From Anthoceros angustus (taxonomy: Eukaryota > Plantae > Anthocerotophyta), in assembly GCA_010909165.1 (NCBI GenBank), contig VJWM01000358.1, positions 1 through 40,993 of the forward strand: a stretch of DNA of 40,993 nt. The letters run 5' to 3'. Below are positions 8,423 to 38,161 of this stretch, in pieces. The first letter of the stretch is position 1; the number at the start of each line of letters is the position of its first letter. Position numbers and translations under genes: made by a program. The notes beneath the pieces are model-generated. The model was not told the origin of the DNA and ran no database searches. It saw only the letters and a program-made list of their open reading frames with translations.

Positions 8423-8496
8423 GAATGTGAAGCAAAATTCCAGTTAGATGGATATCGGAGATGGCGTGAGCGATTTTCCGCGTTGTCTAGTGTCAC

Positions 8497-8757: not shown

Positions 8758-9446
8758 GCTCTGCTATGCGAGGCCGTGCTATGCTTCCAACACTAGAATG
8801 GAATGAGGCCAGGCAGTCCTCCAGCACCACATCCCGCCTTTCAAAGCGCAAACACTTCAATAAAACTTCCCACATACTTTCAAACTTAAACATAAAATAA
8901 GTAAATGGGAATGGAATTTGTCCGGGTCGACCCAAGTAAATCGGAAGTAACGGAACGACTCCGTGCGGTCCCTGTGATGAATGATGGGTTGGGTTGGGTT
9001 TGGGTGTCCATGGAAGCTGGATCCAGCCTAGAAACCCTTTTACTTATAATTTTCGATAACATGATCTTTCATGAATCTAAGCTCACTGGGTCGGCAGCTG
9101 TGAAAGGGAACAACACCCTCTCCCAAACCATAAGTCAGTATGGGGAAGGGTTCCAAGTGCAATGATATTGCGGATATAACCCATGGTGTTTCTCAGTGAA
9201 TAGCGTGGTATTGTCCTTTTCTCTTTCCAATAGATTTCGGTGGACATACATAAAGTTGTTGTTATTGTTGTTGCATATGAACATTCTCCGGAGGCATATG
9301 GACGTCCTTGCCATCAATCCTCCTCAAGAGGGCATATGGACGTCCTTGGCATCAATGGTTCATGAGCATGAATGGTGATGAGTTTATATTATAGGCTGCA
9401 AATGTTGCAACCTAATCGTAATCCTGCACCTTTCCGTAAGGCCATG
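8497..9446 (+). repeat. Tandem duplication, copy 2, left part (resumes at 37284 after the transposon)
   Basis: Matches 7163-8187 up to cctttccg(t)aaggccatg. The continuation gatgtgtcgacc.ggtgagaaaatcc reappears at 37290. Confidence 0.9.
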
Positions 9447-9468
9447 TATGGAATATCCGCCACACGAG
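9447..9468 (+). repeat. Left terminal inverted repeat of the IS3EU-like element
   Basis: TATGGAATATCCGCCACACG versus the right-end reverse complement TATGGAATACCGATCTCCACG: 9 bp perfect, then imperfect. Confidence 0.8.
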
Positions 9469-10398
9469 TCCGTGGTGACTTTCTTCTTTCTGCACGCTAC
9501 GAGGATATGCCACGGAATCTTTCGATACTCACGCATCGATAATACGTGCCACATCACTTCACGGGTTCGGGAAAAACATTCTATCACACGTTCATCGGCC
9601 CGTGTTCCGATGGTGTCATCTGATCTTTTTTGATGACGGTGTTAGGTTTTCATCGGGTCTACACACAAACATGGCGGGCAACACATACACACGGAACTTT
9701 TGTTCGCAGTATGGCCGCGTCACAGAAACCGCCGCAAATCCTCCGCCATCACTATATGCTATGGAAGGATGATGGGAGGCGATCCCTACGTTTGCGTGTG
9801 CTTGCCTACTAACATGCTTGTGCTTGCGGTTGGATGTATGGGATGCGGCTGCAGGAAGATGATCGTAACTTCACCTTTCAAACAACACACGATCACGGCT
9901 AAGGAAACTGTAAATGCGGGCATTACAGATCCGAACATGCTTCACACTATCCCCCTCCTCAACCTCATCAAGCAGGGCAATGTCAAGGCCGTCCTACAAC
10001 GCCCACTAGACACTACACCGCGCATGCTGCTCAACCAAAAAACATCCGAACATATAGCGCTCACCTCATGGTGGGGCGCTACAACAAAACACCTCACGCC
10101 CACAGCGCGGAAGAGCCTCGAGCGGCCCTCCATCCTCTTGTGCTCCGGAACTTGGCTCCTCCGCGTACTGCCCTGTCTTTTCTTGTGGAGGCAGATATCC
10201 CTCCGCACCGGACATGGGAGGTGCACCGATATGGCGCGGGCTGGCAGCACCACTGTGAGGTTGGGGAGGTGTTCATCCCGACACAATGGAAGGGGGACCA
10301 AAGCTGGAAGGCGTGGCGGGGGCGATTGCGGAGGTGGTCGCCCACCACCGCAACCGCATTGCACATTGGCCCGATGGCATGGAGGATGCGGCCATTGC

Positions 10399-11830
10399 TG
10401 TGGCGGGACTTTTGCCGATGGCGGGCGCGCACAATCCGTGTCGTTGTAGGAAGAAGTCCGTTCCCAGGGAATGATAGGCCCGTTTACCGCGTTTGGTGAT
10501 TCTTACCGTCCGCTCGTTCGGTCACACACACATACTCTAACTACTCACAACGTCACGAACTGGTGGCCCAAGCGTTTGAGGACCCGTTCGCGTCGTGTCG
10601 TTCACATACATCCTTCACGCATCCGGTCCTTCTCTCCTCTCACGCTACACTCTTGAGGGTCTTAGAAAAGACGCAGCGGGTTCTTGATCCGGACCTCCTC
10701 CGTCGTTCGGGCTCTCCGTCCGGGCTCTACACCCTCGGAGTTCCTCCGGCTCACGCGTTCAGTCAGGATTGCCTCAGCCGGACCGCGGCTCCGGGGCGAC
10801 ACGGATCACCATCACCCTTCCACGCACACACCACAACAGCGTTAAGTCCGTCACGGGACCTTGATCAATCTCCCGGGGTAGCCATTGCACGCCGGTGACT
10901 CAGACTCACGTTAGCGAAGACTCACAAAGGTGCAGAACGCAGCATCAACCAAGAAGATGCTTTACTGCGGCTCGGCCCCTCTTATCTGCGCCCAAGGTGG
11001 CGTCTTTACACCCCATTCGGGCGATTTCGGTATACCTAATCGGCCGCCTACATTCTCCCCCTATCTCCTTCATTGTGGGAAGGTCCCAGGCCTCGGGAAT
11101 TGGTCCAATCCCGTCACAGCGGTTGGTGCACCAATCGGATGATCGTGAGCGGGACCCCTCCTCTCCCGAATCACAGCCGAGTTGGAGCTCTGGCGGTGAC
11201 AAGCCGTTACCACGGCGTCATCCTCCTGGCCTCCACAGGTCCTTGGCGGTGGGGCCACCCATCGGCTCCCCTAGCGTGAAGTCGAGAGGGGCTCCTCCCT
11301 TCTGCCGCGGTCCTCGAGGTCTGTCTCGACTCACAGAACAGTGAAACTATTCACGGGTCGGCTGGTCCAGAGCCTTGTCTGCAGGTCCGGACCTCGGGGT
11401 CGGTTATTCACCGGGTCCGGACTTGAGGTCCGGACTTATCTACGATGTCCGGACTTGAGTCCGGACTTATTCTGGTCCGGACTTGATTGGGACTTCGTCG
11501 GACAGTCCCTCCCCTCGGGGTCGGGCAAAGTCGGACTCACGCCCGGGTTTCCTCCTCACGGGACTCCTCCGTGGCTCTCCTCAAGTCCTCCATTGTTCCC
11601 GGGTTACTTTCCGTTTATCCTATTTTGACTGGAGTAGGTTCCGGACTTATCCGTTACTCGTAGTCGAGCTTGCCATAGTAGTGCAGGGTCCGTTGTTCAC
11701 TCAGTCCGGTATACTCCGGAGCCTCGTCCGGCGCTACCCCAATTTATTCCTCCTTTTCGCCTTATTTATCCTTCAATCCTAAAAAAGCGAAACCCTACTT
11801 ATTTCTTAACTCCCGAGTGCATAGCCCACA
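10399..11830 (-). repeat. 3' LTR (TG...CA) with an internal ~10-15 bp GGTCCGGACTT tandem array at about 11360-11540
   Basis: Begins tgtggcggga, ends atagcccaca; collinear with 17345-18803. Confidence 0.9.
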
Positions 11831-14800
11831 TACTCCCTTCTCATCTGTTGGCGTCTCCGCCAACACTAAAGCATAATCTTCTTCACCCGCCACCCGTTTC
11901 AGTGGGCGGCTCTCCATCTCTAGCATCGTGGGACCGGACCCGTTGTCATATACTTGCACCACTTGATGCGGACCCATCCATCTCGGTGAAGTTTGCACGG
12001 AAAATGCATGTGTGACTATCATAAAGGAGGGCGGTCCCCTTCCTTTACATACTCCCGATTCGCGATCGGCGATCGTGCCAAATCTTTTTGGTTTTGCACC
12101 TGCATCTTGGTGAGCTTCTTCCACATCCTCTGTCTGAAACCCCAAGAGTCGCTCGGTGGCTTTCCTCTTGTCTCCTTCCATCATTACTCGAAAAGTGGGC
12201 ACTTCAAACTCTCGGCATTACGGGAGTGTCCGTAGGTCAAGTAAGGTCCGTTGTGTGGTCACCTTCTCTGCTGTCCGGGCATACAGTCGGATGGCGGCTT
12301 GGTATCCGATCATGGGCGTAGTTCTGTGAGTTTATTCGAGATCCTGCAGATGAGCCCATTTGTCTTCTCTCAGCCATTGGCCTTAGGATTGTAGGGTGCC
12401 GTCTTGCGATGATTGATGCGAAATACTCCGGCCACCACATCATTAAGGAAATGGGTTCCCCTATCACTTACCAAGCTGCGGCGGACATCCGTGCGGGTTA
12501 TGATGTTCTCGTGCGAATTTGGCCACGGTATTTGCGAGTCCGTTCTTGTCGCCCGCCTCTACCCACACAGTGCGATGTCCGTTGCCACCGGGATGTATCT
12601 CCTTTGTGTGTGTCTTGTCGTGGTGTATGGGTCCAACAAAGTCAATACCCCACTTTTCGAAGGTGCGGTGCCAATATCGTACTAGCGGCCTTTGTCGTCG
12701 GGGTTGGCTTTCCGATCCTGACAAGCATCACACTTCTTCCTCGGTGGGTGTCCCCATACATTGTTGGCCACCGATCCGCTTCAAAATCTTTTGGTGGTGA
12801 CTGTAGTGTCCACCCCAATCCTTTGCATTCCCTTGGCCTCCCTGTCTCTGGGTTGCAAGTACCTTCGTTCTACTCGTTAATTTGAACACACACCGTTGTA
12901 CATTACGAAGGGTCGAGCATAGTGCACGAATGCCTCCCTCATCCACGAGTGATTTTGAAGCTCCATTCCCAGTCGCTCTATTTCTTCGTGGGTCGGACGA
13001 CGGCGGACCCTCCCTTCTTACGCTAAGGCTGCAGTTCTCGTAGCTTGGGGTTCGGTCTGGGCTCCTCCGGTTGTACTTTTCTGCAACCAATGTCTCATCC
13101 GGAGCGCATCTTCACGATCTCTCAACACTGCTGTTTTCAATCGTGGACGAAATGCATTTTGGTCTTGCCTCCCTTGTCTTGTTTCCACTTGACGTGAACT
13201 CCTGCGCAGCAACAATATCCACCTTGCTATCCGTCCGGACAGTCCGTCTTATTCACCGGATGCTTGCAAAGTGGTCTACATAGAACACAAACTCTTTGGT
13301 AGTAGGTAGTGTCGAATTTCTTGTGGCATATACCATACCCGTGCTTGGCTCTGTAGTTGTGTATTTTCGTTCAGCGTGGGTGGTATCGTCCGTAGTATAC
13401 GGGATAATCCCGCGCTTGTCGTCCTTCGGCTCTACTCGATAGCAAAGCGGACACATCTACATACACATGAAATTTCTGCTCGATCCGGTCCTCTTAGAAC
13501 CGTGCGCTTACCAAGGTGTTACCAAATCCGAAGGCCTCCTCTCGCTCACTGACCGGTCCAAACCTCCTCCTTCGCGATGGATTACATCAACTTAGCCCTC
13601 TTAAAGTCCTTAATAAACCGTGGTATCCCACCATTCCGAAACCTCTCGGCTCCTTTAGGTTCGTCGGTGGAGGCGGATGACCGGACCTTGTCTGGTCCAC
13701 CTCGATTCCCGCGACACGATGTCACAAGATTCCCTCCGTCATTCCAAAGTAGCATTTCTCGGTGTAGGCTCAATTGAGTCTCCGGCGCTCAAGCACCTTC
13801 TTAGATGCCCAAGGTGTTTGTCCGCTCCCCATGCACACAAAATCATCCAGAATATCTCCATGAAGTCCCTCGAAGTCACGGAAGGCGTTGGTCACCATAC
13901 GCATGAGCGACCACAGCTCGGTCATCCCAAAGGCACTTCTCTTGTAGGCAAACGTACCCCACTCCGTAGTGAAGGTCGTCTTGTCGGTCACTCCCTTAGG
14001 TGCAATTGGTTATATCCGGAGTAGCCATCCGAGGAAGGAGTAAGTAGTCCGTCCGACCACCTTGTCCAAAATGTCGTCTGAATGGCATCGGAAGTGGTCC
14101 TTCTCGTTCGTTGAGCTTCCTCAATCTTGGCATACCGAATTTGTCTGGTTGTTTCTTGGGAACCACCACAATCGGTAGCGACCCACTCATTGTTGACGAT
14201 GGGGAAAATGATGTGCCTCCGGTATCAAGGACCTCCTTCACCTTGATCGAATACTTGGGGTTGAGCTTGTATTGTCGGATTGATGGCACGCTCCGGCTTC
14301 AAATCGATCTTATGCTCTCCCACTTCTTGAATGCCCTTCATGTCCGTGACCTTGAAACACCATAAAACTCCCCCGGTGCTTTAGTCCTTCCTTGGTCCGG
14401 AGGCATGCCTTTCTTAAACTTGAATTTGTGGCGGACCTCCACTTCTTCCACGTCGTCCGGGTTCACCGTCTCCGTTCCGTCTTTGCCTCATGCGTCCAAA
14501 CCCCTCGTCCTCCTCTCGGGATCGTCCTCTCGCATCCCCATTCTCGAAGAGCTCGTCGGAGGTGAATCGTGTTACTCCTTGATGTCGCTTTTCCTTGGTC
14601 CGACTCTTGTTGTCCCCCTTGTCTTTGGTCACCTCCTCTTCACTTCCTTCCTCCGGCCCGTTGTGGCGTTTACTCAAAACAATCAACCACTTCCGCACCA
14701 AAGGCATCCCGGTAGTCCATCTCCTCCTCGGACCGGCGGATCTTGGCGAAAGTCGCCTCCTCGGAACTATCTTGTTCGTCGCGTGGAGTCCTCCGAGGTA

Positions 14801-17277
14801 TACCCCGGTAGTGCTCACGGTTTCCCCACAATAGGTGTCCTTGCTCCGGTGATAACCCTCCCTTCTCGCACCTTAGGGTCCCGTCCACCGGCTTGAAGTG
14901 AATCTCCTTCCTTCCAAAGTGTAGCTGCAGGCCAACCCATGGCCGCCCAGCAACACCTCATACCCTAATGGTCGGCGGTTTGATCACAACAAAATCCGGT
15001 TTGTAGGGTGCAGGCTATGGTGGCCAAGACTCGGTTAACTCCCGCGGATCTCTTCTTGACATATACGCCATTCTCGAGTCTTCGTTGAGGTTGAAGGATG
15101 TGAAGCCCAATTTTTGCGTGGCTTCATGATGAGGTTGACTCGGACCCGTGTCCAGCAGTACATCCTTGATGATACATCCAATCTCCACTTGTACCACTGG
15201 CCCGTATGGGACACCACCCTCACTTCCGTGCTACCCTTCACGGCTTTGGTGCTCATGGTGGGTTCCCCTAACGGCCCACGGACCTCTTGATTTGGGTTAT
15301 CCCTCGGCGGTATCGAAAGGACACAAGGTCTGCGATTCATCATCGTCGCCACATTAAAGGCGAGGCTTCTACCCCAATCGAGGATCCTGCTGCTGCGTCC
15401 TCATCCTCTCCCGGGTCACTTGTGTTACGGTATTCTCCGGATGCTTGCGCATTTCCTCCTGCAACATCTCGGTCACCTCCGGACTCGTCCGGTGGAAGCT
15501 AACGTCGGTCGCGGCACCGTTCCCTTCTCCATCTGTCAGAACTTCCTTGGGTAATCCCTCGGAGGCTGCCGTCCAGCCCTCCTTCATCGGTCGGATCCTC
15601 TGCTGGTATTTCCGTTTGATTGCCTTCCTCGTCGTGGCGCTTCCTCGATCTTGTTCTTCTTCATGGCGCCTTTCTCGCTCCTTCCTTTCTGAGTAGACAC
15701 CTCAAGATTTCCACTACTCCCTTCCTTTGACACCCCACTACCTTCTTGTTCTTTCCATCTCGCGTAGGATCTCTCTTCCCTCCATGGCCCAGCATCTTGA
15801 CTTGCCGTCAGATCTTAGGAGGTGGCGTTGGTGGTCGAGTTCTCCGCTTGGTGTGGCATATCGTACCGTCCTTGCGGGGTTGGGACATAGCGTCTTGCTG
15901 TCGGCCCTTGCGATCGCCACACCGCTCGAAGTCCCCATTACCACCTCGTTGGAGTGCGGACAGCGTTGGAGTAATGGCGAGATTCCGCGGTTCCACGGAC
16001 CACGGCCGTCGGAGGATACGAAGGGCTCCCATGCGGTCTTTGCATCGGTGGGGCCCGTTGTATTAGCGGACCTCCGGTTGGCGGATACATGGTTTTGGGA
16101 TATCGCGGCCCGGAGGGCTTCACAACGATAGGCCTCTTCCCATTGCTCCTCGGCCTCCTCCTCGTATTCGTAGTCCACTTGATGCACCGGCCTTGAGGCG
16201 GTTGGACTTCGAATGGCCGTGTTCGGCACACGGCGATCTTGCGTTAGCCGTGTCGGTGTTTTCCGCGCTCTCGGTCCTTAACACAGTTTATCGCGGTCCT
16301 CTACTCTCTTTATCACTTTTCCGGTCCTCCGGACACTACCTCCTTTGAGGGAGTCGGGTCGTGAGCTTCTCGGACGGTCTTGGTGTCACCACCTCCTTCT
16401 TACCACCTTCTTTTTAGCGCCTTTTGCTCTTCTTCTTGCGGGGATACTCTTCCTCGCTAGAGACCTCTCTTCTTGGACTGCTCCTCCTCAAGACACCTCC
16501 GATTGGTCTTCCTCCTCCTCACGAAGACTCTTCCTCCTCAAGTCGAACCCGTTTCTTCTTCTTCTTCTTGCCTCCTTGAGTTCTTTATCCTCGATGTAGC
16601 GATTCCTCGTAGTTTTGGCTCGACCGCCTTGCCACGTCCTTCTCGGCGGGGGCGTGCACAGCCATGGGTTTGGCTAGGCCGGCCGAACCACCGTCGCTTG
16701 CATCGTGGTATGGGTTGGATGCGATCCCTCGGGGCATAGAACCGCTCGATGTCTGAGCCCGGCTTCTCCTTCTTCCTCGCTTGATTTTCCAACTTTGATA
16801 ATACATACCCTCACAGGTGATCCTCGAAACCGTTCTAAGAAGGCATTTTCAAAGCTTCAAGCAGGCGGGTGGGGCATTCTCTCGGTGGTACTTTCTCCGA
16901 TACCATTGAGCGTGTCCTCGGAGAACCCCTTGGAAAATTTGGGATGAGGCTGGCGTCGACTCCCTCTCCCGTTGAAGTTGGCTTTGGACAAAGTCCTCCA
17001 CAAAGGTCTCGCATCCGCTCCTTCTTCCCTCCGAATATGGATGCGCTTGTTTGGTCGGTAGGGGCCATGGCTGCGCCATCGATGGGTTAGGCGTGTGTCC
17101 TACCTTCTTCCGTTGGCGTCCCTCGTACCCGTCTTGGTCCGCAATTCGACCACGTTCTCCCTCCTCGATCGGCGGTGCTCTCTCGTTGGGTTTGGCGTCT
17201 CTCCTCTCACAGCTCGGAGAGCACCGAGGTGACGTCCGATCCTCTGACAGTTCACTCTTGGCCGTCGACTCACGCAT
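11795..17277 (-). CDS. gag-pol: Gag-Pol polyprotein (frameshifted in this sequence)
   Basis: Gag FQGVLRGHAQWY near 16900; protease VLLDTG near 15150; RT RQYKLNPKYSIKVKE near 14270, FTTEWGTFAYKR and ILDDFVC near 13850-13980; RNase H YTTTE..GMVYA...FVFYVDH near 13270-13370; integrase FEKWGIDFVGPI near 12650 and PRWMGPHQV near 11980. Confidence 0.9.
11831..11846 (-). other. Polypurine tract
   Basis: Minus strand AGATGAGAAGGGAGTA abuts the TGTGGGCTAT start of the 3' LTR. Confidence 0.8.
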
Positions 17278-17323
17278 TCACTTACCTTCTCTTCCTAAGG
17301 GCGCGCTGCGGCACCGCGATTTC

Positions 17324-17341
17324 ATTCCCGACAGCGCGCCA
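17324..17341 (-). other. Primer-binding site, resembling the plant tRNA-Asp (Athila-type) PBS
   Basis: Minus strand TGGCGCGCTGTCGGGAAT lies 3 nt inside the 5' LTR end (..CCGCCACA-TTT-TGG). It is similar to TGGCGCCGTTGCCGGGGA with an indel and substitutions; the tRNA identity is tentative. Confidence 0.6.
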
Positions 17342-17344
17342 AAA

Positions 17345-18803
17345 TGTGGCGGGACTTTTCGATGGCCGGTAGGCGCGCACAATCCGTGTCGTTGTAGGAA
17401 GAAGTCCGTTCCCAAGGGAATGATAGGCCCGTTTACCGCGTTTGGTGATTCTTACCGTCCTTAGCGCTCGTTCGGTCTCAACACACACACATACTCTAAC
17501 TACTCTGGCGTTCAGAGCCGGTATGGCCAAGCGTTTGAGACCCGTTCGCGTCCGTATCGTTCACATACATCCTTCACGCATCAGTCCTTTCCTCTCCTCT
17601 CACGCTACACTCTTGATCTTAGAAAAGCCGGGTTTCTGTGATCCGGACCTCCTCGTCGTTCGCGGGCCTCTCGTCCGGGCTCTACACACCCTCCGGAGTT
17701 CCTCCGGCTCACGCGTTCGATCCGTTCGGTGTCGGACGCGGCTCGGGGAACACGGATCACCCATCACCCTTCCACACACACACCGCGTTAAGTCGTCACG
17801 GGACCTTGATCAATCTCCCGGGTATCGTGCACCTTTCGGTGACTCGGGACTCACGTTAGCAGAAGACTCACAAGGTGCAGCAGCGGCATCAACACCAAGA
17901 AGATGCTTTACTAGGCGACCTCGGCCCCTCTTATCTGCGCCCAAGGTGGCGTCTTTATTACACCCCTATTACGGTGATAGCCATTTCGGTATACCTAATA
18001 CGCCTACCGGCCTATCCCCTATCTCCTTCGCCGTGTGGTGGGAAGGTCACAGGCCCCTCGGAATGGGTGGTCAATCCCGTCACGGCGGTTGTGGTGCACC
18101 AATCGGATGATCGTGGGCCCCTCCTCTCCCGGAATCACAGCCGGGTTGGGCTCTGGCGGCGTGACCGCCGTTACCACGGCGTCATCCTCCCCAGCCCCTC
18201 ACGGGTCCTTGCGGTGGGGCCACGGCTCAGCTCCCCTAAGCGTAAGTCGGGGCTCCTCCTTCTTCTCTTGGGTCCTCGAGGTCTGTCTCGACTCCACGAA
18301 CTTGAGTCGGCTTATTCACAGGTCCCGGCTAGGTCAGAGCCTTGTCTGCAGGTCGGACCTCGGGGTCGGTTATTCAGGGTCAGGACTTGAGGTCAGGACT
18401 TATTCAGTCCGGACTTGGTCAGGACTTATTCGGTCCGGACTTGAGGTCCGGACTTTGAGTCGGACTTGGTCAGGCCTCCCCTCTGAGGTCAGGACAAAGT
18501 CGGACTCGCCCACCAGGTTCCTCCCTCAGGGACTCCTCAGTGGCTCTCCCTCGAGAGTCCTCATTTGTTCCCAGGTTACTGCAGGCGTGCCCATCCTATT
18601 TTGACACGGGTAGGTTCGGACTTATCCGTTACTCGGCGGTGAGTCGGAGCTTGCCATCAGTGATGCAGGTCCGTTGTTCCTCAGTCAGGGAATATACTCG
18701 ACCTCGTCGGGCGCTTTAATTTATTCCTCCTTTTCCGCCTTATTTATCCTTCAATCCTAAAAGCGAAACCCTACTTATTTCCTAACTCCCGAAGTGCATA
18801 GCC
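17345..18803 (-). repeat. 5' LTR with an internal GGTC(C/A)GGACTT tandem array at about 18340-18500
   Basis: Begins tgtggcgggactttt and matches 10399-11826. The terminal CACA appears eroded (atagcc then attgc). Confidence 0.88.
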
Positions 18804-19574
18804 ATTGCGTTCATGTATTCCATGAGCGACCCGGCGTAACATTCCCAGCAGGCTGCGTTAATCGGCCCGGTGATAGTCCTGTCCATCACTCCTCCATGTC
18901 GGTGCGGTGGACCACGAGGTTAGCACCTTCTCCACCACTTCAAGAAGGAGGCGATGGCGCCCGTCATGGCGGCGTCGATTACGGCATTGGACTTAGCTGT
19001 TGTTGCTACCATACTCAGGAGCTCCATTGGGTGGATGCCCCACCTTGTTGCGGCCTTGGGCGGTGGCCCCTCCCAGTGGTCATGGCCCCATTCTACGCCT
19101 TACCAAGCACCGGGTTAGCCCCAGACTCTCGCCCTTGCATCTTGGCTCACCCAGGCGCCCGCCCCTCGCTAGGTCTGCCATGCTCGCTGCACCTCTTCCT
19201 CTTAGCCCACGCTGCCTCGAGCTCAGCGATGAGCTCGGCCAGCTCTTCTCATGCGCCTCCTCAAACCAGCCTCACTGATTCGATCTTCCGGCGGCTCCAC
19301 GTCCAGAGATAGCGCGGATGCACGCAAGTTCTGCCGTGATGACCTGCTGTGAGGCCCTGGGTCTCGCCCACTTCGCCCACACACCGCAAACCCAACTCGA
19401 GACATATGAGTACCGTGCATGGCAAAGTTCACCATTAACCAGGCATTCTGAGGCATGACAATGACAAGCCCGAACCCACCAGCGTTGTCAAACACATTGC
19501 GATCCGGGCGGATTGTGCGTGTTCACTTACCGGAGATCTTAGATTGTTGTCCAGCCGCGGCGCTCCCTCGGCCG

Positions 19575-21097
19575 TGTGCCGACTTTCGATGGAAGCGCCG
19601 TAATCCCGTGTCGTTGTGGTAGGGAAGAGTCCGGTTCCAAGGGAATGGTCTGCTTATTCGCACGAGCCCTCATCGCTGAATCTGGACTTCATCGGTTGGG
19701 TCCGGCGGTCTATTGCAACCCAAGTGTGTGTGCCCTCCACAACTGCTTCGGGCGGACTTCCCACAAACCCAGCCCGGATTTCTCGATGCTAGGAGCGGGT
19801 TTACAGCGTTCCGATCGGACTCACGTACTCTAGCGTGCCCTCAGCTCTCCACAACTCCACCTCAACACACACGCGTAGCGACTCTTCTCCCTTATCCATT
19901 TCCAGAGTGGTCACACCAACCAGCCGAGTGTATTCACGGGGCCACCTTTGCCAAGGTGCTTCCGTTGAATGGCTTTCTGACTGCAACCAGCCTCGTTCCG
20001 GCCTCAGGATGGCTTCCAATGATCGCTTAAGCGCCTCCTAATCCCCTCGGGCACTTCACGTTAGAAGTGGCTTGCATCCCACCTCGTTCAGCCTCAAGGA
20101 TGGCTCCAGACCAGTCGCCCCAGCGCCTCCTAATCCCCTCATTTGCTTGCGTAATAGCGGCTGCATCCCAAGCCTCCGTTCAGTGACCTCAAGGTTAGTC
20201 ACCTTTTAGAAATCACCCACTTGAGCACCTCACGAGCTCGGGCCACGGCCCAGTGCACCATCAGCGTGTTGGCGGAGCTCGTCACGAGCTCTAAGCACAT
20301 CCCTCTACCACCAATTAATCACTTGCGGTGTGCCGGGAACTCACTCCGCTCTCCGAGCCGACACACAGGCCGAAGATGGTACCGGGATGTGCAGGATCTT
20401 GGGCGCTTGAGCCTTCTATACTCCCATACCTAACCTAACCCGCCTGTATGTATATCTAACCTCACTATGTATGTACCTTAACAGGGTAGTAATAGCCGGG
20501 GCGTAGCTCATCAACTGGCGGACTTCTGCACCATTGCTTCCACAGCAGTGATCCATGCGGCGTGCCACCCAAACTAAACCACCGGCGAACCACTCGGTCG
20601 GACTTCGCCGGGCAGACCACTCGCCCGGAACCTCTCAAGGCAGACCACCGTCAGACCTACGCGGGCAGACCCTCCATCGAACCTACGCCCGAGCCAGAAC
20701 CCTCCGTCAGACCCTCCGGGCAGACCCTCGTAGACTTCGCCGGGCAGACCACTCCGTCAGACCTACCGCCCAGGCAGACCCTCAAGCCAGACCTACCCGA
20801 GCAGACCCTCCGTCAGACCTCGCCCGGGCAGACCCTCAGCCAGACCCTCGCCGGGCCAGACCCAGACCTGCCAGACCGGGCCCCGTCGGACCTCGCCCGG
20901 GCGGACCACTCCGTCGGACCCTGGCCCGGGCCGGACCCTCCCGTGGACCTCGCCAGACGGACCGAGGAGTCTAGGGATTGCTTTATAAGTGCAATCGGCA
21001 ACCTGCCTTATTGGCTAACTCCTCCTATCCCTCTGCTTGATGCGGACCAAGAAAAAAAGCAAAACCGCGGAAATGCGGACATGGTTGGCACTCCACA
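19575..21097 (-). mobile_element. Probable solo LTR of a related Ty3/gypsy family
   Basis: Starts tgtgccgactttcgatgg...ccgtgtcgttgt.gtagggaagagtccggttccaagggaatg, similar to the LTR start at 17345. Ends aaaagcaaaacc...ccaca, like aaaagcgaaacc...ccaca. No adjacent PBS or internal domains; no clean TSD. Confidence 0.6.
20560..20960 (+). repeat. Degenerate short-period tandem array (GGGCAGACC..CCGTCAGACC type) within the solo LTR
   Basis: Repeated gggcagacc / ccgtcagacc / cggaccctc motifs. These generate the spurious Pro/Arg-rich ORFs 20555-20974 and 20562-21374. Confidence 0.85.
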
Positions 21098-27300: not shown

Positions 27301-29300
27301 CTCCTCGAGCGCGACCACGACCACCACGCCGCCGCCCGCTCTCCATCCCCCAGGTGACATCCACTTCTTCCTCCTCCGGCACCCCAATCGTAAACCTCCG
27401 AAGGCGCCGCCGCTCGCTCCCACCTCCCCTGCAGAGGTGTAAATTACTGCCCGTCCCGGATGTACGCATTTGCTGTCGGCCTCGATTTGTCTTGCGGGAA
27501 TTGGGCGAATGTCGCCGATACCGGACTTGTGTGTCGCGGCGCAACCGGCGGCATCACGGACCACTGGCGGCCAGACGCCGGCGGGCTTGTCGAATAGAGC
27601 CTCGCACCCCTCAACAATGCCACCGTGCGACGGCGTTCGTTGTCGTCGCCCCCGGCATGCGCGCACCCAGCTCCACTGCGTGGTCGGCGCGACACGAAGA
27701 CAACACGCCTTCTCCATCTCCCAAGTCGACCTTGGGAAAGCCTTGTCGCGGTACTTGTACCCGGCGGCTTTGAGCCAACGCCGCCTCCGCCATCCCGGCG
27801 GTGCCCGCGCTCTTTGCTTCTTCCGCGGGCCTATACCGCGACCGTGATTCTGCGTGAATGGGATTGTCCCAACGGCGCGGGCGGCCTCGCTCACTCGCGC
27901 GCGTCCATCCTCCCACCGGTGGCGGGCGCGGATTGCGTAGATGATCCGCCCACCCATTCTCCGCCATATGTGGATGGGCCACAGGGCACGTTGAACCTCC
28001 GGCGGTCAACGATGGCGGCTTGGGCGGAGCGGCCGTCCATGGCGCGATATTGGGCATCGGCGCCGCCGTGAAGGTGCGATGCCGGGCGCAATTGCGCGGC
28101 TCCGCCCGCTGCGCGGCGGCGATGGCGGTGCGGGCAAGGCTCGCATCCGTGAGGGCACGGATCGAGATGACCTTACATGGGGGCATATTCTTGGCGCATT
28201 CGCCGTCTTCCGTGCGTGCCGAGCAAGAATTGTGCCACAATTTCTTCCTTCACTGCGTTGGTTGAGAATGCTCACGCGTTGTCTTAGAAAGCCATGGACT
28301 GTGTGGAAGATCCGCTTGCGCCTTATGTCCCGCCCACCAGTGGCGCCTCGATGTGTGGGACGACAGACGCTGAGCGGATCGATGGCGGCGGATGCAAGCA
28401 TTGCGCGCCCGGCGTTCGTGAGTGGGTCGCGAAAGCTGAAATCATTGTCCATATTCTCCGTGGCCCGCCCGACATCTTTGGGCCGCGGCGTGCATCGAGT
28501 TATGGGATGTGGCCGTCGCCGCGGCGAAGTTTTGGCTCCGATATGCGTGCTTGCATTGCGCTATGTGGGCAAAACTCTCCACGCGTTACCGCGCCCCCAT
28601 CTTGCGCGATGCTGCGGCCAAGCCACTCAACACCCTCATCGTTGCGCATCCCCTCTCCCGCTTTGGTTGCGGTGGACGCGACATGTGGATCGTGGCGTTT
28701 GACTTCGCGGCCGCCATGTGGTCCCGGTGATCATGGTTCCTTCGCGTCACACTTGCGAAGATCTGTACGGTGTCCCAATAACATATTGGGTCCGATGTTC
28801 GGAATAAACTATTGGGTGGAAAGTGCATGATGCGCTATCAACTGCGCCCTCCGAGCATTTGTCGGACCGCACGCAATACGCGTTGGAAAAATTCATTGTG
28901 CCGCTTATTCAAATGCAATTTCATGTCCATTGCGACATCGACCACCGTGGTGGGAGGTCGTTTGGGCGAAAAGGCGACGTTGCTGCGTCATGCCTGCACA
29001 ACCATCCGGACATCCTACCTGTCATGCCTTTTAGGCATCCGCCATATTCTATGCACCATCCGGCTATGCATTAATATCCCTTCGTAGTCCGCCATATTCG
29101 TACCGGCTCATGAAGTCCATCCCTTGCCATAAAATCCGTGACCATGGCCCATATTGGCAACGCGACCATCGCACTTCACATTTTCGATGGCATGGTTGCC
29201 CTTGGCCCTTCCGCGCCTCATGGCTGGAGATTTGTCTGGTCACTCCCACATCCATCGGCACCTGGTCCTCCCGCCTTACCCGGCCCGCTCCACGGACGGT
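24400..29300 (-). CDS. KDZ (Kyakuja-Dileera-Zisupton)-type transposase with an upstream SWIM-like zinc finger; heavily frameshifted
   Basis: Motifs occur in the expected order on the minus strand: SWIM-like ESFAHIAQCKHA (about 28545-28585); CxC-type MWPTSPR...TAF/TECL...SLDKRAMLECL (about 25620-25790); SVYGN and SLDRKWFRF (about 25260-25335; cf. Zisupton C.AC...SVDGNRKLYRF); GACTGTHG (about 24910); KVFLYIGC (about 24826-24850; cf. YD+.C); AMHSAAVRC (about 24705-24730; cf. H...H...C); ADAEGRRF (about 24620-24645; cf. DGE..ER.W). Family motifs were recalled and aligned by eye; gene ends are approximate. Confidence 0.6.
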
Positions 29301-29789
29301 AGTGTAGGCGACCTGCCCGCCATCCGCCGGCCCGCAGAGGCACTGCCGGCTGCGTGAGCCCGCACATGCCCCCACCCGCCGGCCACCCACCACAAACGGC
29401 CCCACGCTCAACCGCCAACCCACCAACCAGCTAACCCGCCCCAACCCGGCCAACCCACCCAACAAACCAAAAGCGAAAATGCCGACCACGAACCAAATGC
29501 CCAAATTTCTCGAGCGCATACAATGCCTTACATTGGTGAAATGCATAGCATGCGAAAAAGGCAATTGCAGTTGAATGTGCAAGCGGGCGAGGTTGAATGT
29601 GCAATGGACAGACGACGCCATAGAACACAATGCACTTGCGATTAAGCAGGATGACGTTGCGGGCTGCCTCGCGCTCCCTCCTCGAATGACAATGACAATA
29701 ATGAAGGAGGTGCATATTCGTTATATGAACACATGAACAATGGTCCCTTATGTCCAAGACCAAGGCAAGCGCAATGCATTTGACCGGTG

Positions 29790-31320
29790 GCCGATCAAGT
29801 TGGTTGCCTAACGCTCCCACTAGATCCCAAAGGTCAAGAGAGAAAGAAGCCAGTGCATGGCGGTATGGATGCCTTTCCATGCGACAAACTTCTACAAATA
29901 ATGAATGGGTAGGAAGCCACATATATAGACATGTTTATCGGTACGTATGTCAAGACCAAGGAAGCAGGTTAATCACGTGCCACCTCTCACTCGGTAGGCA
30001 CTATAGGTCTATTTAAAACCTACTTGTCCTTGGCCTTGAACAAATGATATGTATGCGATAGCGTACTCGCCCTTTTCATTGGGTTATGTTGTTCATGTAT
30101 TCGTATATGTGTTCGCAACCCTATATATTGTGGTACCGTGCCCACATGCATCACGATGCACATGGATTCATTGTGGCATGACACAACATCTACCTAGGCA
30201 TGTTCACATACACAACATGCCAACCATACTTCATGCATACACACCATGTGCATGCCATACATTCAATGCACCTCATCACATGCACCCCTTGACCAAATCA
30301 CATGGCATATGGCAAGTGGTATGACAACATGTTCGCTAAAGTCGAAGACCAAGGAAACACGTCAGCAAGGGTTGGACGAGGCTCCCACCGGAAAATGCGG
30401 ATCCCAAGACATAAGAGAGAAAGAAGACAAGACCTTGTCTGCCATCATGCCAAGTATGGATGCCGTTCCATGCGGACAAACTTACAATCGAATTATGATT
30501 GGGTAGGAAGCCACATATATAGACATGTTTCACGGTAGCGTATGCGAAGCCAAGGAGCAGGTTGAATCACGTGCCACCTCACACCCGAGTCGAAACTTTG
30601 GGTTTATTTATTATCATACTTGTCCTTGGCCTTGAACAAATGATATGTATGCACTTAACAACGTGCTTCGCTTTTCCTTGGGTTATGGTGTTTAGGTTTT
30701 TCTATGTAGATCGATGACCTATATATGTGTCATAGTACCGTGACATACATCGATGCGAGATAGATGGATTGCGCCACATCTAGGTAGACATGTTCACGTG
30801 CATCCGATTGCAACCATGCATCATGCATACATACCATGTGCATGTCATGTGGACCTTTTCCTTGGGTTATGGTGTTTAGGTTTTTCTATGTAGATGCGAT
30901 GACCTATATGTGTCATAGTACCGCCATACGATGCGGATAGATGGATTGCGCTATGACACGGATCTAGGTAGACATGTTCACGTGCATCCGATTGCAACCA
31001 TGCATCATGCATACATACCATGTGCATGCCATGTGGACCTTTTCCTTGGGTTATGGTGTTTAGGTTTTTCTATGTAGATCGATGACCTATATGTGTCATA
31101 GTATGCCATATATACATCACGATGCGAGATAGATGGATTGCGCAGATCTAGGTAGACATGTTCACGTGCATCCGATTGCAACCATGCATCATGCATACAT
31201 ACCATGTGCATGCCATGTGCACCTTTTCCTTGGGTTATGATTTTAGGTTTTTTGTATATAGATTTATCTTGGGGCGGCATATCAAAACCACACCGACGGG
31301 CCGGGAAGATGGATTGGTTG
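29790..31320 (-). repeat. Right arm of the long inverted repeat, including a 184-bp tandem array (about 3.2 copies, 30671-31260)
   Basis: cttttccttgggttatg starts at 30671, 30855, 31039 and 31223 (period 184). cttgtccttggccttgaacaaatgatatgtatgc occurs near 30021 and 30619. Confidence 0.85.
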
Positions 31321-31399
31321 GAAATGAAAATTGGGAGGTTGTGTGGGCCTCAAAGTGAAAGGGTTTGATACGTGTGCAGCTACGCCGCCCACAAGGAGG

Positions 31400-34300
31400 G
31401 TTAGTGAAATGGGGGAAGTGGGTGGCGATACCGGTGTCGTTGGGTTTAGGCGACGTGCCCAGTGATCTTTCGGTGATGCAACCCGTGCGGAGAAGGGACG
31501 ATGGGAAGGGGCGTTGCTGGTGGGCTGGAAGGAAGCAGCGAAGTCGCGTGCCACGTGCAAGGAAGGCGCGGTGGCGGGTGGGTGGAAAAGTGCGCCGGCG
31601 CCCGTGCCGTGGAGGAGGATGAGGAACACAAGATCGGCGATGGCGGCGAGGCGGCCCAGTGGGTTGGTGTGTTCTCGGGCTGGCGCTTGAAGAGTGGAAG
31701 GGCGGCGGTAGTAGTAGCCCATCGTAGATGACCGCGCAAATCACGGTGCCGGATGCGCATGTTTGCGGTCTGGAGCACGGCCTTGTGCGGAGGGCGCGTG
31801 GAAGGGCGGCGGGAGGAATGGGAGATGCAAAGCTCGGCGAGTACATTCTGCGTGGCCTATGGTTCCCATCAACTCTGGGGCTGTCCAGTTCTTGGCATTT
31901 GTGGAGGACCATCAAAGCCGATGTCTGCGCATAGAGGGCTATCCAGAGAAACTTGCCGTCCCTGCACCGGCGAGGGCGGACGGATGGAGTGGCGGTGGAC
32001 AAATTCTGCGAGTGCCTACCGGGTGGAGTGCCACATTTTCATGCACCAAGTGTTCGGTTGGCGCGTCGGGATGGAAGAGTCGGAAAGGAGAGCTGCGGCT
32101 GGTGTGACCTTAGGATTTGGTTTTCCAGTGCACGCGCCAGTGCCACGACCTTGTGAGAGGTGGCCTGAGGTATTATGAATTGGTTGATTTCGTGCGGTAT
32201 GGAGAAATGGAATGGAATGAGAAGGCGGAGGCGTTGTTCCGGGATATCAACCGGCGACGGAGAACCATGTTAGTGCGAGGATCACGAGTGCAGGCGGTGG
32301 GCGAACCAAGTGCCGGCCGTGAAGGCACAAAATTGTAATCTTGGTTGCGGTTGGGAATGGCGTGATGGTGCGGAGCAGATGGTGAGCGGCCAACGGCAAG
32401 TAAGGTTGCGGGCTTCGCGGATGGGCTGCAACACGGTCACGTCGAAGGTGCAAGCCGCTAAGTTGCGGATCGTTGTAAGGTGTGCGATGCGTGCGCGATT
32501 GCACATTCAATGTTTCTGAAAATGCAGTGTGGCGAGAATGCGCCGCACGCATAGCGCACGGGCGGAAGGGTGCGGTGGCGGAACATGCGCGCATATGCGG
32601 CGCTGCGACGGATCGGTTGTGCAAATGGGCGGGCGGCGTAAAGGCGGCGCCGATGGGGATCTCGACGATCCGAGGCCGTGCAAGTATACCTATGATTCCG
32701 TGCACATTCAATGCGCCATGATGGTGCGTTGAAGCGAGGCGATGGAGGAGGAGGTGCGGCGGCGCCGGAAGGAGCCATGGCGGGGAGGAGGAGTGGGGAG
32801 GCCATGGACAACCCGTAGATCGTCCGAGCGGAAGGTGGAGTGGAAGCACTGGCGGCGCGGTGGCGGGATCAACGATGGCGCACCCACCTTGGGAGGCGTT
32901 TCGGCGTCGATCTCGGAGGTGCACCTACAAGTGGAGCAGTGCTCGGCCCGTGTGCGCGATCTGCGCATCCGTGGGTCACCATGAATTCTCAAACCTCGCT
33001 ATTGATTGCGTGGATTGCACACGTTCTCCATTGCCACGGCCATGCTTGGTGCGGCTTTCGAAGGGCGTCTCGCCGCCCAGCGGCGGACGGGCTATGTGGC
33101 CTCCAGTGCGGAAATGTAAGCTTTGCGCGGTCGGCGGCGTCACCTCGAGCCTCACAACTCTTGTGTGTTGCGTGGGTATGATCCATTCGAGTTTTTGCGA
33201 CACGAGGCGTGGGCGATGGGCCGTCGTCGCGACGATCCAGGCGGCGAGGTGGATGGTCGGGCGCCGGGCGGAGGGCAGGATCGGCGAAGTGGAGGAAGGG
33301 GCGGCGCGGCATGATGCGGCGGCGGCGGGCGATGTTGGCCGGCCGGAGGTTGCTGGCGAGTGGTCATCGAGCGGGTTTGTATGGTGACGCCCGAACGCCT
33401 TCCTCGGGCTCAATGCACGGCGATCGGCACATGCGGACGGGCGGAGGAGGCCGTGGAAGCGGCGGTGGCTCGCGGAAGCCGGGCGGCGGTGGAGCCGGTG
33501 TGGGAGTGGGAGAGTCCCGGCAAATCCACTCCACCGACTCCGCATGTCGAGCGTATGGCACGGGGAGGCGAGAAATGTGGCACGATCGGTCCGGGAAATG
33601 GGTACTCATGGTATTGGAGGTTCGGCATTGTCGCAATGCACAAAGATTTCATTTTTGTGGAGTGGGCAGTTGTGGCCTGACCATTGAGAGGTTGGAGGTG
33701 GGCGAAGGTGTGCCTCGGTGGGCGGTCATGCACGCCTTGGGCACGGAATCTTTGGAACAGCAAAGAATCGGCATGGCACGTTGGTGCCGTTGTGGATGCA
33801 ATTCCGAGCGATTGCTGCGTGCACGACCATCGAGATAGGAACGCCGGTGACCATGCTCTGAGAAGTCAATGGAGGCTTGTGGGAGTTTTCGATGTGAGAA
33901 GGGCCTTTTCGCAATCACCGTCTCGAAAGTGGAGGAAGCGGGTTGGATGGCACCCTATGGTCGCAGTGGAGGGAATGATAGCGATGGATGTTACGCAATC
34001 GGAGAAGTGGAGTTGGAAGCTAGTGGTGAGGCGGTTGGGCGGAATGGGACCGGCGTCACATGTGCTGTGGACGGGCCACGGTGGAACATGCGTGAGGCTC
34101 GTTTGCGGTTGGGACATTGAGCATCCTCCCGGGGAGTTGGATCAACACAATTTTGTGGGCGCGGTCATTGCCGTTCGTGCAGGGGCCGGAGCATTTCATA
34201 TGTTATGGACTTGAATCGAGCGAAGGGAGTATTCCACACGGAAGCATGTGACGATTATCGTGGCATGCCACACAATGGGGTCGCAGGATGCCTCGATATG

Positions 34301-34400
34301 GAAGATCCCATGCCTTTTGTTGCGAGGGGCCGTCGTGGAACCCTGCGCATTGAGGTAAGCAGTTGTCATTTGCGGGTTTGCGGGAAGCAAGAGTGAAGCG
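31400..34400 (+). CDS. PHD-finger plus SET-domain protein (putative histone lysine methyltransferase) carried by the transposon; frameshifted; N-terminal part unidentified
   Basis: PHD at about 32950-33130: VCAIC....HHEFSNLAIDCVDCTR, His in the neighbouring frame (HCHGHA), then PPSGG..MW....CKLC. SET at about 33870-34220: EKGLFAITVSKVEEAGWMAPYG, CYAIGE...VDGPRWN, IEHP, VIAVRAG, then in a shifted frame EHFICYG (cf. GEEL..xY). A Cys-rich WCRCGCN lies just upstream. Gene boundaries, and whether it is fused to the transposase, are unknown. Confidence 0.62.
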
Positions 34401-35099
34401 AGGAGCCATTGTCGATGGCCCGCGGCATGCGAGGGGCGCAAGTGTGTTTGCGGCGAAGCCCATTCTAGATTGTTCACATCGTGTGTTTGCGTCTGCGGTT
34501 TGGAAGTGTTCGGTGCACTTTGCACTTCAAACAATGAATGAATCACGAGCGAAAAACGTGATAGCTACGGGCGCTTTCGAGGAACTTGCTGCGATCTACC
34601 TCCGGATCTGCGCGTGTGGAAACCCCTCCCAGCGCTTCGCGGACCGTCCGTGGAACAAAAATCGGAGTGGGCATACGCTAACGGTGATCGAGCCGTCCGC
34701 ACGAAACCCTTGGCTGCGGACATGCCATTACTCGGGCGGAAAGTGTTAGGAGGATCGAAATCGGCGGTACTGAGAGGTGCATTTGGGGTTTGAAGCGAGG
34801 AAGGCGCATGGGCAGGAAAAAGCGCCATGCAGTAGGCGCGGTGGGTGTTGAGGCCACCAAGTCTCCACCTTGGCCATCACGTGGGGCAAAAGCAGTGAAG
34901 GGTGCCCATGGGCCTTGGCGCGCGGCCTTCCGAGCCAGCGGACGAAGGAGGAAGATGGTGGGCGCCCGGCCGCATCGAGAGGTCATGAGCCCATCATCAT
35001 GCAGACGGTGAAAACTTGAGGCAATTCTCGTGCGAGGAGCCGTGGGGATGAGGGCTGGAAGGTGGAGATGAAGGGATGCATAGGAGGCCGGCGGGGTGC

Positions 35100-36470
35100 G
35101 CGCCACCATAAGCGTATGATTTGGTGCGGCACTTGCAGCGGGGAGACCATTGAAAGGCCTACCGGCTGAGGCTTGAGCACCTGGCGAGGCTCCTGCGCCG
35201 GCACCACGGCATGCAGCGGGTGTATGGGAGGTTGTCCGTGGAGGAGGTGTGCCTGCATTGCCACGCATCACCCGGCCGGTGAAACGGAATCGATTCGTGC
35301 AGGCGGGCAAGCGGATGGAATCGAAATCCCAAGGAGGCGGTCACGGGCGCTGCGTTTGATGCGGCCGGAGCACGCACGGCGGTCGGCGATCGCATCGCGC
35401 GTCGACACCAATCGACACCCATGTACATGTGGCATATGGATTGTAAGTGCGTGAGTGGCATGCGATGTTCGAGTTCGCGTTGCGAGAAGTGATTGCGGGG
35501 TTGTGGCAATCAGCGGCAGGTATGGTTGCCTTGTCGCGCGACTTATGACAAGATGTACCAATTCTACTTGAGTGCAGGGGCCATAGATGGGGCAACCCAT
35601 TCGTCCCCAGTTGGTCTTGGAGGATAACAAGCGAGGCGGCGATTTTCAACGCCTATGTGGAAGCGGTGAGGAAGTTTGGGCATCCGCGGATTCGGTCGGA
35701 CTACTGAGCGATAAGCGAGATATGAACGAGGCGAGGCCAAGGGCACATGGAAGCAACTTCATCCGGCCCCTCTGCACAACGTAAAAGTTAGGAGGTTGGT
35801 CTGCGTTTTCCTTATGCTGCGTGAAGTGAAGTCGATGGCGGGATTGTTGCGAGGATTGAGCATTTCGGCGGTCCTTGGGAGAGAAGTGGGCATTCCTCTA
35901 CAAGGGTACATGATGGATATGGTGAGGAGCGTGACTGGACATCACCAACCCACAGCACATCCATTCCACCGCGTGACCTTCATGCCACGATGAGGCGGAG
36001 CTCGGCGTTGGAGGCGGTATGGAATAGGCACGGTGCGGAAGATCGGGCAGCCGGAGACATTCCGGCCATGTGCACGCTATCGCATTCAAGAAGAAGGTCG
36101 ACTACAAGGGTGGGTGCGACCACCCGCATATGGGGTGAGGAGGAGGCGATGGCGAGGAGTTCGATGTGGGTGGCCCTCGGTATGCACAAAGCGTGGCCCC
36201 AGATGCCACCACTCGTGACGCATTCTTTGCCGGGGTGAGCAAATGCTGTCCATTCCATTTTTATGCATGAGTTCTGACATTGTGGAGGGAGGGCGCATCG
36301 CGCCATTGTGCGAGCAGAGGCGGCTCGTATGGGCCCGCTGGGTTGTCGAGAGCTGCAGATGGCGAGGACAATGCATATGCAAAGGGATTGCGGGACATGG
36401 ACTTCCTCCGGACATGTATCGGTGCACATGGCACTAACAACACTCTGCAGTGCGGGAGCCACGAGGACGC
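35100..36470 (+). CDS. IS3-like / integrase-core DDE transposase (IS3EU type)
   Basis: Stitched motifs: LRRHHGMQRVYGRLSVEEV; HPAGETESIRAG.QADGIEIPRRR.RALR; RIARRH..PMYMWHMD (first Asp, about 35438); YDKM...GAIDGATH (35544-35600); AIFNAYVEAVRKFGHPRIRSDY (second Asp, about 35700); MNEARPRAHGSNFI..LHNVKV(R/E)RL (expected Glu near 35788); FMPR; ALEAVWNRH; DGEDNAY. This matches the eukaryotic IS3-related pattern WHxD..KL...G.IDG.SR...F..A+..+G.P.R+RxD...HN.+IERLW...F.PR....WN.H. Confidence 0.82.
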
Positions 36471-36758
36471 ATTGCCCGAATACCTCCACCGGTGGGCGGA
36501 GGAAGCCACCCGTGGGCGTGGGCGGCCATCACCTGCTGCGGTCTATGGTGCACGAGGTGTGAGGCGTGTGGCCCCTTTGCCCTTCCGGGAGTGAGCTAGG
36601 GGTGGAGAAAAGTGTTTTGTCGCTCACCATGACACAGGGCGGTGACATTGTGCGCTCACCATCACAGAGGCGGTGACAATTTGGATTTGTTTGTTCGCGT
36701 TTTGAGAGTTGAGCCCGTGGTGGCTTTGTTGTGGTGGAATGTAAAGGCGTTGTGTGAA

Positions 36759-37003
36759 GATGGTGCGCTGCGCGAGCTGTATGGCCTGCGCCGCGACGCT
36801 TTGGATGGCTGCGATAGCGGTAGCGAGGCGTACATGGCGCCTGCGCTACTCGAGCACAAGGGCACATATACTGCGAGCAGGCATGGCCCTATGGAAGATG
36901 GTCTACGCGCGGCTGTATGGCCTTGTCACGCACGGATGGCTGCGATAGCGGTAGCAGGCGTACATGGCGCCCTGCCTTCTCGGCACAAGGCTATACTGCG
37001 AGC
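36759..37003 (+). repeat. Subterminal tandem repeat, 2 copies of about 131 bp
   Basis: ggatggctgcgatagcggtagc..ggcgtacatggcgcc starts at 36803 and 36934; gctgtatggcc and tatactgcgagc are also duplicated. Confidence 0.8.
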
Positions 37004-37262
37004 GAGCATACGTATTTCCCTCCTATCTCCGCATAAAGCCACGGTGGCAGTATCGTGATGGCAACGCGGAGATGGGGTCATGCGAATGGATGTCCATGCC
37101 CTCACCATTGTGTGTCACAAACGATTCACAAGACACAGACACCACATGCTTAGTGAGATCGGGACACGAGGCGGCGCCCGGCGGCCGATGTCGTCAAGTG
37201 TCCAGTTTTCCGCCGTGTCGGCCGAAAAACTTCTTTGGTCACAATGGAAAACCCTAAAGGGG

Positions 37263-37283
37263 CGTGGAGATCGGTATTCCATA
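37263..37283 (-). repeat. Right terminal inverted repeat of the IS3EU-like element
   Basis: cgtggagatcggtattccata, immediately followed by the TSD gccatg. Confidence 0.8.
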
Positions 37284-38161
37284 GCCATGGATGTGTCGAC
37301 CGGTGAGAAAATCCTTGATGCACTAACACGTGGCGTGTCAAGGGACGATGGTGTCGACGGTTAATGGTTTCTACGGTGGGGTTCGCAATCTATTGAGCAA
37401 GTTGGTGCTGCTGTTGCTCTCACGGTTTTAGCCACGCTTTGAGTGTGACACCGGGCGATGCTCGCATGGTATTATTGAGGCTGCAAGCGGTTGGAGCGGT
37501 AAGGTGGTGGCGACAAGCGGCTTACCCCCACATCGGGCGGGGGGTAGGCGAGCCACCATCGGTGATCCCTTCTGACAGATTCTTGTGGCGCAGAAGGCGA
37601 GTCCGCGGCTCCTCTGTCCCGAGCAAGAGGACCCAGGAAGAAGAAGAAGACTAACTTTAACTCCACTAAAGAATGGATTTCCGTCATGGGACTTGGTACT
37701 TAACAACTTGTACCTTGGTGTGCCTAAGCTACTTGCACCAAGCATCCACTCCTTCAGGCACCCCATCTAAGTACCCATCTAAGCGCACGTGGCTCAAGTG
37801 TCAAGGGAGATGCTCTTGTCTGTGTAGGCTGTGGCCCCTTCGAGCTTGACAATTTTATGCATTTGCTGCACTCAATGTAGTTCCTTGTGGCCTTCATCAC
37901 TGTTGAACCGGTGGTGTTTGACCAGGTTAATGGTTTCTACAGAGTTGGGTTCGGCAATCTTTTGAGCAAGTTGGTGCTGCTGTTGCTCTCACGGTTTTTC
38001 TGCAAAAGCCACGCTTTCCGCTGACGATCTCCACAACCAAATCACCCTGGATAGAAAGGATAGAAACACACCTTCCTTCCTCACCTTCGAAGAAAGCAAA
38101 ATCTCCAGTTAGTTGGATATCGGAGATGGCCGTGAGCGATTTTCCGCGTTGTCTAGTGTCA
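37284..38161 (+). repeat. Tandem duplication copy 2, right part, with an extra segment and a partial internal repeat
   Basis: Matches 8182-8494. gttaatggtttctac...agccacgcttt occurs twice (about 37360-37440 and 37927-38017) around 37441-37905, which is absent from copy 1. Confidence 0.85.
37430..38100 (-). pseudogene. NLR-like LRR remnant
   Basis: Minus strand ELH.VQQMHKIVKLEG and CLKEWMLGASSLGTPRYKLL resemble NLR LRR motifs (L.EL.+..C.KL; L+EW). Stops and frameshifts present. Confidence 0.4.

Follow-up and report, generated by a model that had tools for sequence, protein, structure and literature searches.

The 40,993 nt contig VJWM01000358.1 of Anthoceros angustus (assembly GCA_010909165.1), referred to here as the window, carries a genuine insertion of a transposon with terminal inverted repeats (TIRs) at nt 9447–37283. 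The inserted block is 27,837 bp long, is flanked by a 6 bp target site duplication (TSD), and lies in one unit of a tandem repeat, the neighbouring unit of which retains the uninterrupted target. It is probably a large member of the IS3EU/GingerRoot superfamily of transposons, either non-autonomous or decayed beyond recognition, that carries a Ty3/gypsy-type retrotransposon nested inside it. The result is mainly a correction, as the integrase of a retrotransposon that sits within a DNA transposon had been taken for the latter's own IS3-like transposase, and the supposed first IS3EU of a plant is already covered by the description of GingerRoot in 2019.

Junctions and the empty target site

Both junctions and the neighbouring tandem unit were read directly. 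At the left junction, aagGCCATG is followed by TATGGAATAtccg, with the TSD at 9441–9446 and the TIR at 9447–9455. At the right junction, cggTATTCCATA is followed by GCCATGgatg, with the TIR at 37275–37283 and the TSD at 37284–37289. The inverted ends are perfect over 9 bp (TATGGAATA on the left, TATTCCATA on the right). The neighbouring tandem unit reads ccgaagGCCATGgatgtgtcgacc, and the single GCCATG at 8182–8187 is the empty site; this upstream unit (unit 1) is uninterrupted across the target (aagGCCATGgatg).

Self-BLAST gave the same boundaries. Unit 1 (7166–8500) aligns to 8501–9446, and the alignment resumes at 37284–37429 and 37911–38161. The homology between the tandem units breaks exactly at both element ends, fixing the breakpoints independently of the TIR and TSD repeats. 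The chance of a 9/9 inverted match is about 4e-6 and that of a 6/6 direct repeat about 2e-4; since both occur right at the breakpoints, coincidence is not credible. Together with the empty site in the paralogous unit, the junctions show a single insertion with a 6 bp duplication, later than the tandem duplication of the target. The original prediction had claimed a 27,837 bp insertion with 9 bp perfect TIRs and GCCATG on both sides, an uninterrupted target in the neighbouring unit, and insertion after the duplication, and on all of these points it was correct. The event was a cut-and-paste insertion into one tandem unit of about 1.3 kb, in which a staggered cut duplicated the 6 bp GCCATG.

The two units differ by a substitution distance of 3–10%. 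As Pfam recognised no host gene in the flanks, the 'paralogue' is not a demonstrable gene but one unit, about 1.3 kb long, of a tandem repeat.

The nested retrotransposon

The interval 10399–18804 is a decayed Ty3/gypsy-type long terminal repeat (LTR) retrotransposon, nested in the large element and bounded by its own TTGC duplication. It starts 952 bp inside the left end of the large element. A direct repeat of 1.43/1.46 kb represents the LTR pair, both copies starting with TG and ending with CA, with TTGC directly outside both. Identity between the LTRs is 81% when gaps are counted, and substitutions amount to 8.7%. In the minus-strand sense, a purine tract is found just upstream of the 3′ LTR, and TGG is located 3 nt past the inner end of the 5′ LTR. 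The order of motifs between the LTRs on this strand, as judged by eye, is protease, reverse transcriptase (RT), RNase H and integrase, with stops and frameshifts; for protease and RNase H, inspection by eye is the only basis.

RT and integrase were also recovered by homology. A 79 aa piece of the RT matched 24 proteins among 1.84 billion (phmmer, best E = 1e-8), and these proteins bear RVT_1, RT_RNaseH/RT_RNaseH_2, rve and Retrotrans_gag domains. The four best matches that were looked up are from land plants. When the matched proteins were mapped back by tblastn, they aligned to 14117–13608 (RT, with E values down to 1.6e-14) and 12661–12373 (rve), both on the minus strand. The sole PDB match of the RT piece was the Ty3 RT (4ol8), a weak one (E 1.9), and the integrase piece was without a PDB match. 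Over 510 nt the RT keeps a single frame broken by in-frame stops, and the decay is therefore real in part. The features expected of Ty3/gypsy elements were found, namely direct LTRs with TG..CA ends and a TSD within 4–6 bp, and an integrase that follows the RT.

The only rve/integrase-type DDE domain in the inserted block lies at 12373–12661 on the minus strand, downstream of the RT at 13608–14117. It lies between the LTRs, and remnants of RT and of an RNase H-like domain precede it on that strand, which identifies it as the integrase of the nested retrotransposon. The 'IS3-like transposase' of the original prediction is this Ty3/gypsy integrase, situated after RVT_1 and between LTRs of 1.43–1.46 kb. 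No second RT or rve match was found anywhere else in the window by tblastn, and a phmmer comparison of the gypsy pieces with all open reading frames (ORFs) gave no second DDE. A separate minus-strand gypsy integration (10399–18804), with its TTGC duplication, supplied the only integrase-like DDE of the block.

Among public reads, only one small data set of 2019 (run X1) holds 17% of the sampled words and yields short contigs only. Its contigs are 4- to 20-fold deeper on the nested retrotransposon than on the flanks, as expected of a high-copy retrotransposon family. A stretch of about 0.9 kb between the protease-like and RT remnants (14400–15000, minus strand) has no assigned domain.

Superfamily, transposase search and alternative readings

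The ends of the large element, TATGG..CCATA with a 6 bp TSD, correspond to the published IS3EU signature. In rust fungi, IS3EU elements end in TAYGG..CCRTA, with 6 bp TSDs and TIRs of more than 30 bp (Kojima 2025, PMC12730594). Complete IS3EU families always have TA..TA termini, usually with 6 bp TSDs, and IS3EU and GingerRoot form one lineage with 99% bootstrap support (Kojima 2023, PMC10045372). GingerRoot elements have 6 bp, GC-rich TSDs, and 72 of 77 end in TA..TA (PMC6839031); the target GCCATG is 67% GC. IS3EU-type ends with a 6 bp TSD (TATGG..CCATA, GCCATG twice) had been predicted and were found. It had also been proposed that an occurrence in a streptophyte would extend the superfamily or indicate horizontal transfer. 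Cerbin et al. 2019 (PMC6839031) reported GingerRoot from Selaginella lepidophylla and found it in 18 species of moss and 3 of lycophyte. Since this lineage, the same as that of IS3EU, has been known from clubmosses and mosses since 2019, neither is indicated. Mobilisation could have occurred in trans: autonomous IS3EU/GingerRoot copies at other loci of the genome would have provided a DDD/E transposase able to recognise the TATGG..CCATA termini.

The search for a transposase outside the gypsy element covered 152 ORFs, comprising 80 of at least 100 aa and the 72 most protein-like of 55–99 aa. None of them gave a Pfam match to a transposase, an integrase, KDZ or any other plausible family. With the E. 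coli IS3 InsF and IS150 InsK transposases as queries, nothing scored better than E 0.4. A companion KDZ/Zisupton transposase had been placed at 24.4–29.3 kb. Between 24 and 30 kb, a KDZ-type domain was not found by Pfam in ORFs of at least 100 aa or in the most protein-like shorter ones, and a 320 aa ORF from this region had no homologue among 5.8 billion proteins, so this gene was not recovered. Rfam and tRNA scans were blank, and a tblastx comparison of the window with itself was uninformative, its statistics being dominated by the self-hit. Polinton/Maverick was also considered and rejected, as only the 6 bp TSD is common to both; none of its genes (protein-primed DNA polymerase, integrase, ATPase, capsid) was found among the scanned ORFs, and in place of long TIRs there are 9 bp.

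Several observations weigh against an IS3EU/GingerRoot element of this kind. The perfect TIRs are 9 bp long, compared to more than 30 bp in rust IS3EU or 100–150 bp in GingerRoot, and the similarity is not significantly extended past about 9–13 bp (the 400 bp ends score 18, shuffled sequences 12.2 ± 1.9 with a maximum of 22). The superfamily assignment rests on a terminal motif of about 5 nt and the length of the TSD, with no transposase tying this copy to the group. Neither junction was seen to be spanned by a public read or contig. The negative transposase result is itself weak. Pfam was blank on ten minus-strand ORFs of 11.8–15.7 kb and on ten gypsy fragments, even at E up to 10; as it misses an RT and an integrase that are demonstrably real, piecewise Pfam is insensitive on this sequence. 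In every repeat pair, the number of gap openings comes close to that of substitutions (90 vs. 118 in the LTRs; 59 vs. 92, 12 vs. 8, and 8 vs. 6 in the flanking units), and most differences between run X1 contigs and the window are gaps. These near-equal numbers suggest indel noise that would break reading frames, and the window probably stems from an indel-noisy long-read assembly. Such noise weakens any statement of 'no gene' or 'dead copy' that is based on ORFs.

Of the alternatives, the most serious is that a small element transposed and was later inflated by further insertions, i.e., the gypsy element, an 8.7 kb block with inverted arrays, and perhaps others. One nested insertion of 8.4 kb is proven, and the region 22600–31263 has inverted arms of about 1.2 kb and a composition unlike its surroundings, which is what a nested element of the foldback or TIR type would show. 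However, the termini of this block are asymmetric and no TSD was found around it, so it cannot be called a second nested element, and self-comparison revealed no further LTR or TIR pairs. Later inflation is clearly the less probable course. A composite of two small elements was rejected. The 9-mer TATGGAATA recurs exactly at 36018–36026, and the right-end 9-mer with one mismatch at 18816–18824, but these internal copies have no extended end similarity or matching TSD, and their number is within chance (9 found vs. 4.7 ± 2 expected).

An autonomous IS3EU whose IS3-like transposase is split by an intron, with another transposase of the KDZ/Zisupton type in mid-element, as originally predicted, is improbable. 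An rve-type DDE domain does exist in the block, and sequence noise could conceal a further gene, but the domain's setting is that of a retrotransposon integrase, and Pfam (152 ORFs), tblastn searches from rve-bearing proteins and the bacterial IS3/IS150 queries detected nothing else.

It is more improbable still that the block is a TIR transposon of another superfamily, either an 8 bp TSD family (e.g., hAT) that targeted the palindrome GGCCATGG, a single G then being lost at either side, or a different group with 6 bp TSDs. The empty site does read GGCCATGG, and no transposase fixes the assignment. Two independent, symmetric single-base losses would be needed, however, and a 6 bp duplication is more parsimonious; the termini, TATGG..CCATA, agree in full with the IS3EU signature. 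The usual ends of hAT (YAG..CTR), Ginger2 (TG..CA) and Polinton (AG..CT, with long TIRs) do not fit TATGG..CCATA.

An assembly artefact, in which a chimeric join placed foreign repeat DNA into the tandem array, is hardly credible: the junctions are unbridged by public contigs, 9564–10351 at the left end is without coverage in run X1, and the sequence looks poorly polished, but a misjoin would not yield a perfect 9 bp inverted repeat and a 6 bp direct repeat right at the homology breakpoints.

Interior, flanks and related elements

The positions of all features are given in Table 1. The 19.4 kb of the large element besides the nested retrotransposon appears, as far as can be judged from the sequence, to contain no recognisable gene, and to consist of GC-rich, strand-skewed DNA with tandem repeats and inverted satellite arrays. 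Outside the arrays, interior GC is 54–64%, 4–13 points above the flanks, and the satellite arrays are 43–45% GC. The two inverted arrays of a unit of about 184 bp are 64–71% alike. CpG observed/expected is 0.75–1.15 inside the element, lowest in the satellite arrays, compared to 0.62–0.75 in the flanks. This contrast in CpG and GC could reflect age, methylation state or origin. From 10000 to about 29 kb, a span that includes the gypsy element, the plus strand is rich in C and T; from 31.3 kb to the right end it is G-rich, with a GC skew of up to +0.28. No inverted similarity between these oppositely skewed parts was seen by self-BLAST.

Table 1. Features of the window (contig VJWM01000358.1, nt 1–40,993).
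Feature	Position	Strand	Evidence
Tandem unit 1 of the ~1.3 kb repeat, carrying the empty site	7166–8500		self-BLAST
Empty target GCCATG in unit 1	8182–8187		direct reading
Tandem unit 2, left of insertion	8501–9446		self-BLAST
Left TSD copy GCCATG	9441–9446		junction reading
Whole putative IS3EU/GingerRoot-type element in its present form	9447–37283		junction reading, self-BLAST
Left TIR TATGGAATA	9447–9455	+	junction reading; fits published IS3EU end TAYGG (PMC12730594)
Left TTGC duplication of nested retrotransposon	10395–10398		direct reading
Nested decayed Ty3/gypsy-type LTR retrotransposon, 8,406 bp	10399–18804	-	LTR pair, TTGC TSD, RT and rve homology
3′ LTR, TG..CA	10399–11828	-	self-comparison
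Integrase core (rve-type DDE) remnant	12373–12661	-	tblastn with rve-bearing proteins P0003 and P0024; motifs also by eye
RT remnant with in-frame stops	13608–14117	-	phmmer and tblastn
5′ LTR, TG..CA	17345–18804	-	self-comparison
Right TTGC duplication of nested retrotransposon	18805–18808		direct reading
Short tandem repeats, 27–80 bp periods, most GC-rich part of the element	20593–20954		
Left inverted array, ~184/365 bp satellite-like units	22600–23781		
GC-rich 6.6 kb centre between arrays, no gene detected; site of the predicted KDZ gene	23782–30376		
Right inverted array, 184 bp unit, 3.2 copies at 90% identity	30377–31263		
G-rich plus-strand stretch, GC skew +0.19 to +0.28, no gene detected	31264–37274		
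Right TIR, TATTCCATA on the plus strand	37275–37283	-	junction reading
Right TSD copy GCCATG	37284–37289		junction reading
Tandem unit 2, right of insertion	37284–38161		self-BLAST

In the flanks, the ~1.3 kb tandem unit is itself multi-copy in run X1, and one contig of this run links 8064 to 9293, omitting 1,228 bp, which represents another arrangement or copy of the tandem array. Two inverted-repeat pairs were also seen, one at 963–1003/2979–3019 (41 nt, 93%, 2 kb apart) and one at 38738–39000/39894–40129 (about 260 nt, 79–93%, 0.9 kb apart). Each pair may mark a small element of the TIR or foldback kind. A clear TSD was seen around neither.

The element is of modest interest for its size (27.8 kb, or 19.4 kb minus the nested retrotransposon), its very short inverted ends, and its large non-coding interior with a composition unlike that of the flanks. 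If sibling copies share this interior, they would show how much passenger DNA the superfamily moves, and with how little terminal sequence. A bolder reading, which we regard as unlikely, is that the window holds one of a family of giant, gene-less IS3EU/GingerRoot derivatives that transpose as whole units on ends of about 9 bp, with about 19 kb of GC-rich, CpG-undepleted, strand-skewed cargo that includes inverted satellite arrays and lacks both fragments of host genes and recognisable genes of transposons. Such elements would exceed all other members of the superfamily in size, carrying a cargo whose origin and function are unknown, and they may belong to a plant lineage (hornworts) missing from the 2019 description.

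The nested copy shares with plant Ty3/gypsy elements the paired TG..CA LTRs, the short TSD, the order of RT before integrase, and plant retrotransposon polyproteins as its closest proteins. It differs in being heavily decayed, with stops and frameshifts and with LTRs that are 8.7% apart in substitutions.

For the large element, the closest parallels are found among IS3EU and GingerRoot. Rust IS3EU elements with TET/JBP genes have the identical terminal signature and a 6 bp TSD, and are likewise enlarged by extra content, but their TIRs exceed 30 bp and they carry genes (transposase, TET/JBP, alpha-kinase), whereas none was recognised here outside the gypsy element (PMC12730594). Styx of Zymoseptoria, an IS3EU-derived element, is fungal, 7.9 kb long and has four coding sequences with co-opted genes, in contrast to the 27.8 kb plant element, for which no gene of its own was detected. 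The two have in common a 6 bp TSD and cut-and-paste movement, and copies of Styx with defective integrase genes are still mobilised, presumably in trans (PMC10853768). GingerRoot differs from the element described here in its TIRs, which are 100–150 bp in S. lepidophylla compared to 9 bp, and the hornwort element, in which no transposase was detected, consists mostly of unexplained non-coding DNA and the nested retrotransposon. The GingerRoot study accepted search spans as long as 30 kb, and 23 of its 77 intact elements lacked the DDE region (PMC6839031). Shared with GingerRoot are a GC-rich 6 bp TSD, TA..TA termini, an occurrence in non-seed land plants, and the existence of many copies without a DDE region.

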